Assembly (NCBI GenBank): GCA_020891255.1
Contig: BQFW01000014.1
Span: forward strand, 1,550,001 to 1,614,000
Length of the DNA: 64,000 nucleotides
From: Entomortierella parvispora E1425
Taxonomy: Eukaryota > Fungi > Mortierellomycota
Direction of reading: 5' to 3'
The notes beneath the pieces are model-generated. The model ran no database searches. It was given only the letters and a program-made list of their open reading frames with translations, and was not told the DNA's origin. Position 1 is the first letter of the stretch. The number at the start of each line of letters is the position of its first letter. This document shows, piece after piece, positions 47,175 through 64,000 of this stretch. Position numbers and translations under genes: made by a program.

Positions 47175-49901
47175 TCAGCCATCGGTCCTTTGTCTCTTTC
47201 TTGCTCCTCCATCTAGACGCTCCCCTCTTATATCCCTATTGGTGCTGCCCATTTTGGGGAGAGTTTTTGCTACACGGAGAGCAATGTGTAGCTGGTTTAA
47301 CAGCTCTGGCGTGGCAGATCTACCTCGAATGCAGTTCTCGATAGAAGCTAGCAAAGTGGCCGCAATAAAGTTCAACCTCGCTTGATCAGCAGCTTCATCC
47401 TCCTGCTGTTGCTCGACCAACGGCTCCATCACGTCCTCAGGCTCCAGATCCTGGTCCTCTTGCCCCAATACCTCCTCCTGTCGATGCTCGACCAATGGCT
47501 CCATCGTGAGATGAGCAGGTCCAAGATCCAGACTCGCTTGCTCAGACTGACTTGCCTGCCGTTGCTCAACCGATTGGTCTATTGTGTTGTCACAAGGCGC
47601 GGAGCCTCCTTGGGCAACGGCTGAGCTGGAGGTGCCGTCGGATGAGGGCTGGACTTTATCACTAACTGATCGTCGTAACTCAAGGTATACACGCCCAATG
47701 GCAAAAACGTGCTTACAGAGGCGACCCAGACGGAGAAAGTACGGGCAAGTGCAGCTAATGGCCAGAGTGCGCTCGTCCACAGAGATCTCGTGGAAAAGTC
47801 CTGGGTTTGTGAAAGAGTTCATAGAGCACCTCCAAGTAGCGGCACCCGGCAAGCGTAGGAGAAGACGAACTCGCTGTTTGAGAGTAGCACTGTCCATCGA
47901 GATGGCCGTCAGTTTCTGGTAAAAGTCCAGGGTCCCTCCTTTTGTGTGGCGGCTGATCCGGGCAGGTGAGAGTGTGTCCTCGTGCTTGAGATAGTCGACG
48001 ACAATGTATGAGAGAAGATGGACAATTTCGTCGCCCCGCAGTGGTCCACTCCGATCTCGGAGGATATGGGCCATCAAATGGTTGTGCCATGATTCTACAT
48101 AATCGTTGGTAACCATAGCGGCATAATCCACGTCCGTCCGACAAGCCCTCATCCACGTCTGTTGACGCGCTTGTGGGTAGAAATATTCCGTTCGCAGATA
48201 CTTCAAAAGCTCGTCATAGGCCTCCCATTTCGTCCCGAATAAAAGGATCCTTTCCTGTGCCCGCTGTAGATCTGTTTCGTACATGATGGCTGTCAGATCA
48301 GACAGCACTTTTGCTCGCAACTCGATGGCCTTTTCAGGAGTGGCGGCAGTGACAATTCCTCGGATCTTGATGGACCAGACGCGCACGATGTGCCACAAAC
48401 AGAGTTGAACCTTGACTTGGCCGTCAAACGGTTTGTTGACTGTCAAGCGCTCCATACCAGGATCGTCGGTCGTGATGTACTGGATAGGACCGACGGTCTT
48501 TTGGAGCTCTTGAATCCATGCTTGCAAAGGCGCATGAGACTTGTCGCTGGTTAAAAGAAAAGCAACAGGAATCGCTCTCAATGATGGGCGATCCTGAATA
48601 ACAGCGGTGAACAGCTCATAAGAGTTTCCCATGGAACCATGCGTCGAATCGAGTCCAATGGCCACTGGATTTGAGTGCAACTTTTCAATCTGCCATTGCC
48701 GAGCAAACCCAAGAGCAACCGGTCGTTCGCCTTTGTCGTGTGTGTGGGGTGATTCATAAAGGAAAGCCCAAAAGTCTGGATCGTCGCGAAGCTTCTCATA
48801 CCACTTTCTGATCGAAACGTGGTCATTGTCGTCCAGGTGGACGGGACTTTTCCAGTCTTTTCGGTGGACGTTATCTAGATCGGCTGACGTGACAATGTCG
48901 TCTCGGGTGAATGTCAGGTTGGACAGTCGCTGGGCCAAGAGTGCGGGCGGCACAGACAACTTCTTCCTGACCTCGTTCCTGCCAAGACCCAGATCGGTAT
49001 AATAGGCGACCTGGCGCCGTTTCTCATCGCTCAGTCGCAATAGTTTGACATCGTCGGTGCAGCCCACATTGTGGTGGGTGTGGCAGGAAAAGTAGGCGAC
49101 TCGAACTCGGCTCTTTTGCACGTTGGAAGCAAATTCTGGATCGCCGGACTGCGGCGTGTAGGCGCGTAGCTTGTGGACAAGGACCTTGGCGCGGCACCCA
49201 ACACCCATGTGGTCCTTGTTGAACTTTCGTGTTTTCGGCACCTTGACTGCAGGTGTTTCCATCGGCAACGGGTCAGGGTCACCACTAGGGTCCAAGATGC
49301 GCTCTGGTGCAGTTGAGCTCTCCCGTGAATCAGGATCGTGCTGTAGTGCGGGCTCGCTCACTGGACGCCGTGATTTTTTCTTGAAAGAGCCTGGGGGCCT
49401 GTAACGATGGCATTTCCATGTCTCGTAGTAATCGAATTCGCTCCTGCCCTGCGCTTCAGAGCTGACCCTCATCTTTTTCGTCCACCGAAAGAAGCGGCTG
49501 CTACCGTCTCGAAAGAGCCAATCTTTGTAGACCGCCTCGTCCAAGAAGAAGACCTTTGGGTGAACGAGGACTCTCTCTCCTTCAGGAGAATCGAAAATCT
49601 CGGGATCAATGCTATCCAACACCGCGGTATCTGTCACAAGGGGTACGCTATCCCATCGACTTTGCTCGTCCTCTAGTACACGCGTCGCCACAATGTCCTT
49701 GAAAGGAACTAGCGAGTGTAGATCGTACTCGCCCCGCTTTAGTTTGATATCGACCGTAGACCGCATTGCATCTCCTGGGGGGAGATCCGACTCGTCGACA
49801 TCGCCAAGAGAAATATCATTCTGTCGGATCACTTCCTCGTCCTCCAACACTTCTAGCAACTCTTTACAAAGTTGCGGCGGAATAGTCGAGAGATCAGCCA
49901 T
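47175..49901 (-). mobile_element. Mutator-like (MULE) transposase, intact 908-aa intronless ORF; no TIRs seen
   Basis: DDE-type motifs IGLDSTH, ITTDD, LCLWH and TNDYVESWHN; SWIM finger CTCPYF...CKHVFA; N-terminal C..C/H.H-type region (WKCHR...GCRAKV...CHTHH). Confidence 0.85.
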
Positions 49902-60401: not shown

Positions 60402-60473
60402 GCTAACATAGTATAATGGTTAGTATATCTCGTTGTGGCCGAGACGATCCTGGTTCGATTCCAGGTGTTAGCA
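60402..60473 (+). tRNA. tRNA-His(GTG)
   Basis: Acceptor stem GCTAACA/TGTTAGC plus A73; anticodon arm TCTCG-ttGTGgc-CGAGA; T arm CCTGG-TTCGATT-CCAGG; T-runs follow. Confidence 0.96.
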
Positions 60474-60560
60474 CACATTTTGTGCTTTTTTAGAACGTGT
60501 GTCTTTTTTGTCGAAGGAGGGAGCAGCTCAGTTGGATCGTCTTTGGCTGGCGGCGATAGA

Positions 60561-61194
60561 CGAAGAATCAGTCGTTGGTTAGTTATCCGTCGACCTTGAC
60601 ATCTCGTATCCGCCGACCATTAATCACCGACCTTCCTGTCTCTCATCCACCGACCTAACCATTGCCGTATCCGCCGACCTGTCTTCATCTTATCTGCAGA
60701 CGACCCCTTCCTTAGTCCTCGACCTAACCAAAGTACTTTGTTCATGTCAACGAAAAAAAAAAAAAAAAAAAAACTAGATCGGTGACTTATAGACCGGCGG
60801 TGTCTTTCTCACCAACCGCTGTCCTTTCGAGCAGCCGGTCACCAACAGCAGAAGTTTCAAGGACCCAGCTGGCCAAGCTACAAGGGAGATATTGCTTATT
60901 GCTAGACACATTGGTATAAGATCCATAGTATCTACTTTTCACAAGTTCAGGAGAGAGTAATTACTTCGCAACTTTTGGTAAGTTTGAACCCACCTAAAAT
61001 TTCACAGGTCAGCGGCTATGGAAGTGTCGGTGGTCAAGAAACGGAGTGGTCGGCGGATGAGGGACAAGAAGGTCGGCGGATTAGAGAGGGGTCGGTGGTT
61101 AATGGTCGGTGGATACGAGATGTCAAGATCGACGGATAAGACGCCCAAAAAGGAAAGTCCCCCCATGGTCGGTGGTCGTTGGTTAGATTTTTTA
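60561..61194. mobile_element. Non-autonomous TIR element (MITE), copy A, with partly deleted termini
   Basis: Internal inverted repeats (ttatccgtcgaccttgacatctcgtatccgccgaccattaa and its reverse complement); flanked by ggcgataga (60552-60560) and ggcgataaa (61195-61203); reverse complement of copy B. Confidence 0.8.
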
Positions 61195-62542
61195 GGCGAT
61201 AAAACATGGAGCGTCCCTCGACGAAGTACAGCCCAGAGTTCTTGGGCTCTCTATCGGCCTTCCAAACGGGCCATGACGATCTGATAAAAATCACTCTTCC
61301 TGATCCCGTCTCTTTGGAGTAACAATAAAAGATAGCTCTGAAAGAGAATATTCTCCTTTGGTCGAAGGGTTTTCTTGAAGGCTATTCTTCATTCTGCGAG
61401 GAGCAATCTCGTATTGTTCCTTCCTACCCACCATTGTTCCTTTTTGTTTCGCGTACATGTAGTTCAGACTTGGCTTTTATGGCGAGGTTCACGATCTATG
61501 AAAAGAGTTCGTTTTTGTCTTGAAGGCGCTAAAATAAAGATGGTGCACGTTGAACAATATGAGATTGGTGTTCACAGAATGAGAAATAATCTCAGGAGAC
61601 TCCTCGATCAAAAGAGAGCAAAATGAGCACGGCTATTGAGCTAACTATGCTCTCACAGATGACAACAAGCGACCCAATCTTTTTTTTTTCCTTTTTTTTT
61701 TCTGTGCTGAAGCCATCACCTGAACAGGCCAATGCAAAGCGCGAGGCGAAGCACAGGGCAAAGCGGATGGCAAGGCACAAGCCAAATCACAAAGAAAATG
61801 AATACCATTCCCTGCCGAACCTTTCTCGTCCCCGTCTTCATCAATTGAGCAACATTAGTTTTTCTCTTACCCATCCTTGCCTAAAACCCTCTATCTCTAT
61901 TACTTTGACTTCACCCTGCTCTTGCCCTACCATGTTCTCAGGTCATATCCATTCAATACCAGGTTGAACTTTCTGCTACTGCTATTTACTTGAGTCAGAC
62001 ATTATCAACTAGACTTCGGTTCTTACAGCCTTCTTAACCATCGTGTACCAGCCATGACAGAGTTTTGATGCAAGAAAAATAAGTAAATGTAGCCCTAAAA
62101 CCAAAGGTGACGAGTATGAAGTCAACATCCGATATGAGGACTTCGACAGGAAGCTGAGTATCACATTTAAAAACCACACCGAGTTCAAAGTTAGGCCCAT
62201 CGTTCATTTCGCGTCTCCTTTGGGAAAGCCATTGGTTGTGAGTCCTCCAAGTCTTCTGCGCATGGGGGGGGAAAGCCCTAACTGGGCCACTGGAAGGAGG
62301 TGCGCCAAAATCACCAGGGAGCTGACTGCTTCTCTCATTCATTGTGCGGTGTCCTTTGGGGAGTTTGTGCTTGAGTGAAAGAGCGAATGCACACCAGGAG
62401 AGAAACAAAAAAAAAAAAAAAGACTTTTGACAGAGTAAAACAAAAAAAACCCAACTCTCCTTCCTGTCTTTCCGTGGCATATGCCACGGGCAGACACGCT
62501 ATTGTAGTTTTCCTTCGGCGATCAAAACTGCCGTCTCTCAAC

Positions 62543-63220
62543 TAAAAAATCTAACCAATGACTATGTCGTTATGTCGTTTGTTAGTTTTCCACCGACCAT
62601 GGGGGGACTTTCCTTTTTGGGCGCCTTATCCGTCGACCTTGACATCTCGTATCCGCCGACCATTAACCACCGACCCCTCTCTAATCCGCCGACCTTCTTG
62701 CCCCTCATCCGCCGACCACTCCGTTTCTTGACCACCGACACTTCCGTAGCCGCCGACTTGCGAAATTTTGGGGGGGGTTCAAACTTACCAAAAGTTGCGA
62801 AGTAATTACTCTCTCCTGAACTTGTGAAAAGTAGATACCATGGATCTTATACCAATGTGTCTAGCAATATCCAGCTGGGTCCTTGAAACTTCTGCTGTTG
62901 GTGACCGGCTGCTCGAAAGGACAGCGGTTGGTGAGAAAGACACCGCCGGTCTATAAGTCACCGATCTAGATTTTTTTTTCGTTGACATGAACAAAGTACT
63001 TTGGTTAGGTCGAGGACTAAGGAAGGGGTCGTCCGCAGATAAGATGAAGACAAGTCGGCGGATACGGCAATGGTTAGGTCGGTGGTTTAGAGAGGGGTCG
63101 GTGGTTAATGGTCGGCGGATACGAGATGTCAAGGTCGACGGATAAGACGCCCAAAAAGGAAAGTCCCCCCATGGTCGGTGAAAAACTAACAAACGACTGA
63201 GTCGTTGGTTAGATTCTTCG
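62543..63220. mobile_element. Non-autonomous TIR element (MITE), copy B, inverted relative to copy A
   Basis: TIRs of more than 100 bp (gtcgtttgttagttttccaccgaccatggggggactttcc... at 62574 and its reverse complement ending 63197) plus outer aatctaaccaa(t/c)gac repeats; flanked by gtctctcaac (62533-62542) and gtctctcagc (63221-63230). Confidence 0.85.
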
Positions 63221-63274
63221 GTCTCTCAGCAACTTGAGAAGGTATCGAGGCAAAAGAGAACTGAAGCAAAAGAA

Positions 63275-63299
63275 TGCGACCTGTGTGGATTGAACACAC

Positions 63300-63340
<41 letters not shown>

Positions 63341-63347
63341 AGGTCGC
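63275..63347 (-). tRNA. tRNA-Phe(GAA)
   Basis: Reverse complement GCGACCTTAGCTCAGTTGGGAGAGCGTCAGACTGAAGATCTGAAGGTCGTGTGTTCAATCCACACAGGTCGCA folds as a cloverleaf with anticodon GAA. Confidence 0.96.
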
Positions 63348-63639: not shown

Positions 63640-64000
63640 TTTTTTTTTGGTTCTGCAGCAAGGAGGTGGAAGGAGAAGTCCTTTTCTTTCTATTTTCTTT
63701 ATATACTTCCTCTTTCTCAGCGCATCCTGCTTAGCGTTGCGGCAGGGAGGCGGAAAGAGAAGTCTTTTTCTTTTTCGTATTCTCATTTGAGTGCTTCCTC
63801 TTTCTCAGCGCATCCTGCTTGGCGTTGCGGCAGGGAGGCGGAAGGAGAAGTCTCTTTCTTTCTATTTTCTTTATGTACAGTACTTCCTCGTTCTCAGCGC
63901 ATCCTGCTTGGCGTTGCGGCAGGGAGGCGGAAGGAGAAGTCTCTTTCTTTCTATTTTCTTTATGTACAGTACTTCCTCGTTCTCAGCGCATCCTGCTTGG
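63640..64000. repeat. Tandem array of 88-89 bp units, continuing beyond the window
   Basis: ctcagcgcatcctgc recurs at 63716, 63804, 63893 and 63982; the last units are identical and the first is degenerate. Confidence 0.92.

Follow-up and report, generated by a model that had tools for sequence, protein, structure and literature searches.

A family of short transposable elements (MITEs) in the fungus Entomortierella parvispora E1425 is inserted immediately behind tRNA genes. Of the 27 members identified in the genome, 25 are found at most 115 bp past the 3′ end of a tRNA gene, never on the 5′ side, and the tRNAs concerned represent 19 anticodons and 15 amino acids. Targeting of the region downstream of tRNA genes by this family is therefore real and is confirmed. 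The elements very probably constitute a Mutator-type MITE family that is mobilized in trans and aimed at sites approximately 15–115 bp past tRNAs, independently of sequence and orientation. An earlier note on a window of 64,000 nucleotides (contig BQFW01000014.1, positions 1,550,001 to 1,614,000) had proposed, from two copies, that a fungal cut-and-paste family inserts just past tRNA terminators, and this proposal is substantiated by the genome-wide data.

Copies A and B in the Window

The tRNA-His(GTG) gene that serves as the landmark for copy A is found at 60402–60474 (+) of the window and was identified using ARAGORN and Infernal/Rfam (RF00005, 64.8 bits). Runs of four and six T residues that resemble a Pol III terminator follow directly at 60478–60491 (+), with the first T4 at +4, and copy A starts beyond them. 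Copy A is 634 bp in length (60561–61194, +) and reads from end 1, CGAAGAATC, to end 2, ..GATTTTTTA. The CGAAGAATC tip is 86 nt from the 3′ end of tRNA-His. The flanking direct repeats, GGCGATAGA at 60552–60560 and GGCGATAAA at 61195–61203, match at 8 of 9 positions. The left terminal inverted repeat (TIR) of this copy has been shortened through internal deletions.

Copy B is 678 bp in length (62543–63220, −), and its end 1, CGAAGAATC, is at the right, facing the tRNA-Phe(GAA) gene at 63275–63347 (−; ARAGORN; Infernal/Rfam RF00005, 70.1 bits) at a distance of 54 nt from the tRNA 3′ end. The flanking direct repeats, GTCTCTCAAC at 62533–62542 and GTCTCTCAGC at 63221–63230, match at 9 of 10 positions. 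The two arms of the long TIR, at 62574–62695 and 63076–63197, form an inverted repeat of 122 nt with 97% complementarity, and subterminal motifs of the ATCCGCCGACC type are repeated in the left arm. A palindrome, CTAAC.AACGAC-3 nt-GTCGTTGGTTAG, is located near the tip at 63186–63212, and the same palindrome is present at both ends of the members of the family. The identity between copies A and B is 95% across the 589 columns that they share. The two TIR elements described in the earlier note behind tRNA-His and tRNA-Phe were thus recovered. Its reading of the different flanking repeats as the result of independent insertions holds as well, the repeats being copy-specific throughout the genome.

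Family Census and Target-Site Duplications

The census combined a whole-assembly BLAST search with two independent motif scans and yielded 18 large copies and 9 relics. The consensus is 705 bp and the copies range from 600 to 771 bp; they are too short to encode a transposase and are therefore non-coding in this respect. With a length below 800 bp, TIRs, target-site duplications (TSDs), and multiple copies, the family has the general features of a MITE. The TIRs are approximately 170 bp overall, the family tip is CGAAGAATCTAACCAACGAC, and the motif census places ATCCGCCGACC two to five times in each copy with spacings that include 23 and 33 bp. An Rfam/Infernal search detected no RNA family or tRNA-like element inside the MITE. 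Twenty singleton motif matches were fetched, and those without a tRNA exhibit no similarity outside the seed. The copies are 91–98% identical to one another (2–9% diverged), with no pair above 97.8%, so the family is not very young.

Perfect 9-bp TSDs are present in four copies (L002, L003, L004, and L009), and the perfect repeats are TGAGACGCG, TTTTTTTTT, TTGTTTTTC, and CTTCTTTTT. Matches at 8 of 9 positions are found for L007, which is copy A, and for L001, which is copy B read as 9 bp; matches at 9 of 10 positions are found for L008 and for copy B read as 10 bp. The TSDs are thus exactly 9 bp in six copies, four of them perfect and two with 8/9 matches. Two full copies (L005 and L014) have no TSD. 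The duplicated sequences are often T-rich and have no consensus. Since these flanking 9-mers vary between the copies throughout the genome, they are TSDs and not constant parts of the element, the alternative that the earlier note had set against its own reading.

Empty insertion sites were sought in three public runs stored as contigs, and no contig cleanly bridges one. The downstream flanks of tRNA genes with the same anticodon diverge, as judged by eye, past about 10–15 bp, and therefore no paralogous empty site is available. Exact-pattern scans of metagenome contigs returned 0 matches to relatives of the MITE. A second public sample, which is approximately 8–10% divergent in unique DNA, carries contigs resembling the MITE family.

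Position and Orientation Relative to tRNA Genes

Insertions begin approximately 15–115 bp past the tRNA 3′ end, with a mode of 52–60 bp. A run of at least four T residues separates the tRNA from the MITE in 23 of the 23 cases checked, and every adjacent tRNA gene was called intact by ARAGORN. A comparison with chance, along the lines that the earlier note had called for, gives a probability of P ≤ 5e-59 for the observed adjacency, even if 1193 tRNA genes are assumed genome-wide. This number of rough candidates is a deliberately high bound, adopted because the tRNA genes of the genome are incompletely enumerated: the RF00005 search scored 63 of the ~1193 candidates, and a B-box pattern scarcely exceeded its control. 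The family thus has the strong position bias of elements directed to Pol III genes, irrespective of tRNA identity. Relics and repeated insertions at the same tRNA flanks (L011, L012, and L003) suggest that targeting was recurrent. There are two members without an adjacent tRNA gene. One (L037) is at +220–245 and the other, relic L034, is 1.7 kb away; the DNA between L034 and its tRNA is unique and contains no inserted repeat, so this relic stays an exception.

Insertion in a specific orientation, as the earlier note had suggested, was rejected. When orientation is read from the asymmetric core, 13 copies have the CGAAGAATC end toward the tRNA and 6 have the TAAAAAATC end there (p = 0.17). Counting the tip-only relics as well changes this ratio to 14:8 (p = 0.29), and the TSD-verified copies divide 6:2. 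The common orientation of copies A and B is therefore unremarkable, and the fixed orientation to the tRNA that characterizes TRE5 and TRE3 is not seen.

The same genome contains an autonomous MULE of 9612 bp that has a 9-bp TSD and encodes a MULE-domain transposase. All nine of its resolved copies lie 24–69 bp 3′ of tRNAs, in both orientations (6:3). The copies are 99.8% identical and hence young.

A generic preference for the nucleosome-free, open DNA that flanks tRNA genes, instead of a specific protein tether, is an unlikely source of these positions. Plant Mu does favor open chromatin at the 5′ ends of genes (PMC7337890), the insertion range of the MITE is broad, and T-rich TSDs would suit such a preference. 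However, every one of the 25 tRNA-adjacent MITE members and of the nine resolved MULE copies is on the 3′ side, with none on the 5′ side or at a Pol II promoter, and maize Mu shows no such enrichment near tRNA genes (PMC7337890).

Superfamily Assignment and the Autonomous Partner

The 9-bp TSDs, the ~170-bp TIRs with ATCCGCCGACC repeats, and the absence of a Merlin transposase point to a non-autonomous element of the Mutator type. The Mutator-like assignment of the earlier note is in agreement with both TSD length and TIR architecture: the TSDs are copy-specific and about 9 bp (8–11), and the long TIRs carry subterminal repeats (ATCCGCCGACC) of the transposase-binding type. The superfamily was assigned from the TSDs and TIRs only, because the assembly contains no matching autonomous element. 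A partner sharing the TIR ends, for which the earlier note had proposed a search, was not found in the assembly by BLAST, by a scan for the tip 14-mer with up to one mismatch, or by a scan for a subterminal 11-mer, and only MITE copies and relics were matched. Such a partner may have died out, or this strain may lack it.

The MULE domain occurs 37 times in the genome. Three other MULE-domain loci, with open frames of 925, 314, and 394 amino acids, were used as controls, one per family. At the one locus inspected for each, neither TIRs nor a tRNA within 10 kb were detected, and these loci are therefore not evidently related to the MITE system.

The resident 9.6-kb MULE might itself mobilize the MITE, and the common target would then follow from a shared transposase. 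The two elements have in common the TSD length, the downstream window, and the use of both orientations. Their tips are weakly similar, sharing 11–14 of 25 tip-anchored bases (shuffle p 0.0005–0.02), and ATCTA at tip positions 7–11, followed by a short palindrome, is common to both. Cross-mobilization is nevertheless improbable. BLAST detects no similarity between the MITE and the MULE (best E 0.63), and the MULE was rejected as the parent of the MITE on this ground. The MULE is a coding element with 50-bp TIRs, and its motifs are GACAACCCA rather than the ATCCGCCGACC repeats of the MITE. In addition, the MULE copies are 99.8% identical whereas MITE copies are 91–98% identical; with no MITE pair above 97.8%, the MITE was therefore idle during the recent MULE burst.

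There is similarly little likelihood that the MITE belongs to a different superfamily with TSDs of 8–9 bp, either Merlin or hAT-like. The matching transposase is absent, and a TSD of this length is not confined to Mutator; by this measure alone, Merlin would be compatible. However, the Merlin/IS1595-type transposase domain (PF12762) has no match in the assembly, and Merlin was rejected accordingly. hAT elements generate 8-bp TSDs, whereas six copies of the MITE have TSDs of 9 bp, and in two further instances 10-bp repeats match almost perfectly (9/10). The long TIRs with subterminal repeats and the presence of a MULE with the same target in this genome also argue against a superfamily other than Mutator. 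Dada was rejected as well, since the MITE sits ~15–115 bp outside intact tRNA genes and has 9-bp TSDs without a target consensus.

Proposed Targeting Mechanism

In the mechanism proposed for the Mutator-type MITE, a transposase supplied in trans would move the ~705-bp element by cut-and-paste, with staggered cuts of 9 bp at the target. The transposase would direct integration to a zone ~15–115 bp downstream of tRNA 3′ ends, most often at 52–60 bp. Integration would take place beyond the first T-run of the Pol III terminator of any tRNA, in either orientation, and without a conserved target sequence. The landmark would be a protein or chromatin feature of the Pol III unit at its terminator end, such as TFIIIC or the zone of termination, and not a DNA motif. 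We infer from these positions that transposition of the MITE may be tethered to the Pol III machinery. The missing transposase would be a relative of the co-resident 9.6-kb MULE that also targets tRNAs. The chances are somewhat better than even that a fungal, Mortierella-type lineage of Mutator transposases has evolved a tether that is directed to the Pol III transcription complex on its terminator side, and that for this reason at least two families unrelated in sequence, the old MITE and the young MULE, integrate only in the ~100 bp behind tRNA genes. The MITE insertions show that the habit of inserting at tRNA tails predates the young autonomous MULE and extends beyond it.

Some filtering after insertion may have contributed in the case of the MITE family taken alone. 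Random insertion followed by survival only in harmless tRNA 3′ flanks is highly improbable: copies that are 2–9% diverged would have had time for purging, but the target window is ~0.1–0.4% of the genome, so that >99% of random insertions would have to be lost, those in other intergenic DNA included, and the young MULE is already behind tRNAs in 9/9 cases, while the relics and repeats at the L011, L012, and L003 flanks indicate recurrent targeting.

A DDE transposase that chooses a harmless multicopy landmark without a target sequence would be relevant to convergent Pol III tethering and to genome engineering. If the mechanism is correct, the system would offer a natural template for safe-harbor integration of DNA.

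Comparison with Known Systems

Position-specific integration adjacent to Pol III genes is the classic way in which retrotransposons of compact genomes reach a safe haven. The results presented here show that the same strategy is also used by a Mutator-type cut-and-paste element in a fungus. Ty1 and Ty3 of yeast resemble the MITE in their direction to Pol III genes as a safe haven, through protein tethers (AC40/Pol III, TFIIIB); unlike the MITE, these elements are retrotransposons, and their insertions lie upstream of the tRNA gene.

The plant Mutator elements and MULEs (maize Mu, Pack-MULEs, and MuTAnT) share with the MITE long TIRs, TSDs of the 9-bp class, non-autonomous derivatives, and non-random targets. 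The targets themselves differ, since maize Mu favors Pol II genes at their 5′ ends, without enrichment at tRNA genes (PMC7337890), and MuTAnT targets TA microsatellites (PMC4486113).

According to a review (PMC5911963), dictyostelids are the only organisms in which elements are known to insert downstream of tRNAs. The non-LTR element TRE3 of Dictyostelium integrates 40–150 bp downstream of any tRNA, and its landmark is the Pol III unit, not a sequence (PMC5911963). The window of the MITE is nearly equal (15–114 bp), and any tRNA is likewise accepted. TRE3 differs in being RNA-mediated (APE, RT), in its fixed orientation to the tRNA, and in its amoebozoan host, whereas the MITE is a DNA element with TIRs and TSDs that inserts in both orientations in a fungal host. 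Skipper-2, a Ty3/gypsy LTR retrotransposon of Dictyostelium, also inserts downstream of tRNAs, at 8–23 bp and at ~140 bp in related species (PMC5911963), but utilizes an integrase with a diverged chromodomain and is not a cut-and-paste element.

The target-specific DNA transposons given in the reviews consulted are Pokey, CryptonV, and Dada only (PMC8869645, PMC5911963). Dada is similar to the MITE as a DDE cut-and-paste element specialized on multicopy small-RNA genes transcribed by Pol III (PMC8869645). Dada, however, is found in animals and integrates at a specific sequence within the RNA gene, with one target gene per lineage and a TSD of 6–7 bp (PMC8869645); the insertions of the MITE are external to the gene, can follow any tRNA, and have 9-bp TSDs but lack a target consensus. 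Targeting of tRNA tails by an apparent Mutator-type cut-and-paste element is not described in the literature searched. To these known systems the MITE family adds ~25 independent insertions behind tRNAs of 19 kinds and, if the proposed mechanism is correct, would represent the first cut-and-paste DDE system with position-specific, sequence-independent targeting adjacent to Pol III genes.

Copies A and B in the Window

The tRNA-His(GTG) gene (window 60402-60474, + strand) and the tRNA-Phe(GAA) gene (63275-63347, - strand) are called in agreement by ARAGORN and Infernal. Two mutually facing copies of one TIR element, hereafter the MITE, lie between them. Copy A (60561-61194, 634 bp, flanks GGCGATAGA / GGCGATAAA) has its CGAAGAATC tip 86 nt from the 3' end of tRNA-His, and its left TIR is partly deleted. 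Copy B (62543-63220, 678 bp, flanks GTCTCTCAAC / GTCTCTCAGC) occupies the opposite strand with its CGAAGAATC tip 54 nt from the 3' end of tRNA-Phe; its TIR arms span 122 nt with 97% complementarity. The two copies are 95% identical over shared columns. The description in the earlier note of two TIR copies behind these tRNA genes, each with its own flanks, is accurate.

At 63654-64000, an 89-bp unit is repeated in tandem (at least 4 copies, 88% match); the array begins approximately 300 bp upstream of tRNA-Phe and continues past the window end. A public sample with the same organism label (run X3) differs by ~8-10% in the unique stretch at 61246-61805 and contigs resembling the MITE were also obtained from it; the sample probably represents another strain or a sibling species that carries the MITE family.

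Anatomy of the MITE Family

An alignment of 10 full-length copies (pairwise identity 90.7-97.8%, median 94.5%) provided a consensus of 705 bp. Lengths range from 600 to 771 bp, which leaves no room to encode a transposase. The two tips, CGAAGAATCTAACCAACGACTCAGTCGTT for end 1 and TAAAAAATCTAACCAACGACCATGTCGTT for end 2, differ consistently across copies and the core is asymmetric, so that orientation can be scored. A palindrome with a 12-bp stem (CTAACCAACGAC, 3 nt, GTCGTTGGTTAG) is found at each tip, and inside it is a TIR of ~170 bp with several ATCCGCCGACC-type motifs, whose spacings include 23 and 33 bp.

Genome-Wide Association with tRNA Genes

The assembly (38.9 Mb, 20 contigs, with the window at C14:1550001-1614000) was searched by BLAST with copy B as the query, which provided 18 substantial copies and 4 short fragments. 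More relics were obtained from two independent motif scans using a tip 14-mer (at most 1 mismatch) and a subterminal 11-mer. All copies and relics were fetched (loci are given as L numbers), and 20 motif hits that occurred as singletons were added to provide an unbiased check. A tRNA gene adjoins 18/18 of the large copies and 7 of the 9 relics (L031, L032, L033, L035, L038, L050, and L052). The two other relics are L037, 220-245 bp past tRNA-Leu, and L034, which is separated from tRNA-Thr by 1.7 kb of unique sequence. The 15 singleton hits without a nearby tRNA have no similarity outside the seed word and are therefore chance matches; reversed-pattern controls predict about as many.

Thus, 25 of the 27 bona fide members are within 115 bp of a tRNA gene, and it is the tRNA 3' end that is faced in 25/25 cases. 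The neighboring tRNAs represent 19 anticodons and 15 amino acids, and a run of at least four T residues appears between tRNA and MITE in 23/23 cases checked. With an inflated upper bound of 1193 tRNA genes (~1193 rough candidates, 63 scored), the 120-bp 3' flanks comprise 0.37% of the genome, and the probability of finding at least 25 of 27 members there is 5e-59. About 100 kb of DNA that had not been selected for carrying a MITE copy, namely L039-L041, L044-L046, and the first 60 kb of the window, contain no tRNA gene. The association with tRNA 3' flanks is a real feature of the MITE, as the earlier note had proposed.

Head-to-head pairs of same-anticodon tRNA genes, 150-450 bp apart, are a recurrent arrangement in this genome (L005 833-1440, L008 1117-1421, L009 1125-1413, and L070 16-311; anticodons Ser-GCT, Gln-CTG, and Pro-AGG twice).

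Target-Site Duplications and Orientation

Copies with both tips intact carry flanking duplications specific to each copy, the exceptions being L005 and L014. The duplications match at 9/9 positions in L002 (TGAGACGCG), L003 (TTTTTTTTT), L004 (TTGTTTTTC), and L009 (CTTCTTTTT), at 8/9 in copy A (GGCGATAGA / GGCGATAAA), and at 9/10 in copy B (GTCTCTCAAC / GTCTCTCAGC; 8/9 if read as 9 bp) and L008 (ATGCTCGCAT / ATCCTCGCAT). No consensus is common to them, and thus the target is not defined by a DNA word. Since each TSD-bearing copy has its own duplication, the insertions were independent, as had been proposed. No TSD was found at the full copies in L005 (C8:2538461-2539166) and L014 (C5:53610-54211), each with intact tips and behind a tRNA-Ser(GCT) with end 2 proximal.

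The distances from the tRNA 3' end to an intact proximal tip are 15, 52, 53, 54, 55, 57, 60, 72, 86, 86, 100, 103, and 114 nt (median 60 nt, mode 52-60 nt). Short tip-like relics sit between tRNA and MITE in L003, L011, and L012. Micro-derivatives of 30-70 bp, several of them 55-68 bp long, with the tip palindrome region alone are each found ~55 bp behind a tRNA (L031 2982-3049, L032 3035-3090, L035 2993-3021, and L038 3026-3079). Together these remnants suggest that the same flanks were hit repeatedly and retain footprints of excision; the tip-only derivatives resemble such footprints or the products of abortive gap repair.

The fixed orientation proposed in the earlier note did not hold. Scoring by the asymmetric core gave end 1 facing the tRNA in 13 members and end 2 in 6 (p = 0.17), or 14:8 with tip-only relics added (p = 0.29). 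The ratio for TSD-verified copies is 6:2.

Superfamily Assignment and the 9.6-kb MULE

The 9-bp TSDs and long, repeat-bearing TIRs fit Mutator. Merlin elements have TSDs of 8-9 bp, but the assembly lacks their IS1595-type domain; MULE domains are present in 37 instances. No autonomous element with the MITE tips or subterminal motifs was detected in the assembly by BLAST or by either motif scan; the transposase link is therefore missing, and the assignment as a Mutator-type cut-and-paste element is made from TSD and TIR architecture.

An autonomous Mutator-like element of the same genome, the 9.6-kb MULE, is represented by a copy at L043 290-9901 (9612 bp) with 50-bp TIRs (GGGTTTATCTATTTGACAACCC...), a perfect 9-bp TSD (TTTTTCCTT), and a PF10551 MULE domain, 62 nt past tRNA-Ile. 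A second copy, 99.8% identical, lies 61 nt past tRNA-Pro. Both ends were probed in 8 further copies, which brought the total examined to 10, of which 9 could be resolved. Each of these 9 is located 24-69 nt 3' of a tRNA gene (62, 61, 48, 24, 37, 43, 69, 58, and 35 nt), with one end proximal in 6 copies and the other in 3.

The MULE and the MITE have in common the TSD length, the target window, the exclusive use of the 3' side, and the lack of strict orientation. No BLAST similarity is found between them (best E 0.63), and their subterminal motifs are unlike. Of the first 25 tip-anchored bases, 11-14 are identical between the two elements, including ATCTA at positions 7-11 (shuffle p 0.0005-0.02), and each element has a short palindrome immediately inside the tip. 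The highest identity for any MITE pair is 97.8%, and thus the MITE was not mobilized in the recent burst of the MULE. These comparisons demonstrate two distinct families with one target habit. In the simplest reading, the MITE is dependent on a relative of the MULE that is now missing, and tRNA-3' targeting would then be a trait of that line of transposases. No tRNA is found within 10 kb of three other MULE-domain loci, and therefore not every MULE-like gene of this genome shares the habit.

Both elements are found among four clustered tRNA-Pro(AGG) genes (L009 and L047, C12:1763444-1775999): one gene is followed by the MITE at 72 nt and another by the MULE at 61 nt. At L036 3010-3090 (C1:~1819910), one end of a MULE copy lies directly against a short relic that resembles the MITE (GTCGTTGGTTAGTTTCC..CCGAC); no tRNA is present on that side, and tRNA-Tyr is found at the other end of the copy, in L082. 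An uninterrupted 908-aa ORF in the window (47175-49901, - strand) contains a SWIM zinc finger and a MULE transposase domain with a weak score (23.7 bits, under the Pfam cut-off). No TIRs were detected within 5 kb on either side, and the ORF may represent a MULE-derived gene that is immobile or domesticated.

Mechanism of Target Selection

The anatomy is that of a cut-and-paste element, and the footprints are those of 9-bp staggered cuts. Integration is landmark-directed and sequence-independent, just past the Pol III terminator. The transposase would recognize a landmark on the terminator side of the Pol III unit, either a protein or a feature of the chromatin. By analogy with TRE3, which uses a B-box-dependent window 40-150 bp downstream (PMC5911963), obvious candidates for the landmark would be the B-box module of TFIIIC or the termination zone. 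The main rival, a generic preference for open chromatin, accounts for the breadth of the window but cannot account for the exclusive 3' side. Selection after insertion is implausible as the sole cause, given a target fraction of 0.1-0.4% of the genome and a young MULE that is already behind tRNAs in 9/9 resolved copies.

Comparison with Known Systems

A literature search on MITE or Mutator elements and insertion downstream of tRNA genes returned nothing relevant; subscription journals and Repbase were outside the search, and a prior description is possible. The target-specific DNA transposons listed by Kojima (2022) are Pokey, CryptonV, and Dada, the last of which inserts within RNA genes with TSDs of 6-7 bp (PMC8869645). 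According to Cheung et al. (2018), insertion downstream of tRNA genes is confined to dictyostelids, where TRE3 and Skipper-2 show it (PMC5911963), and no enrichment of maize Mu is seen at tRNA genes (PMC7337890). The present analysis adds a genome-wide test of the MITE, rejects orientation specificity, and shows that the separate MITE and MULE families share one target habit. Integration directed to Pol III genes is already known; the carrier here is a Mutator-type cut-and-paste element.
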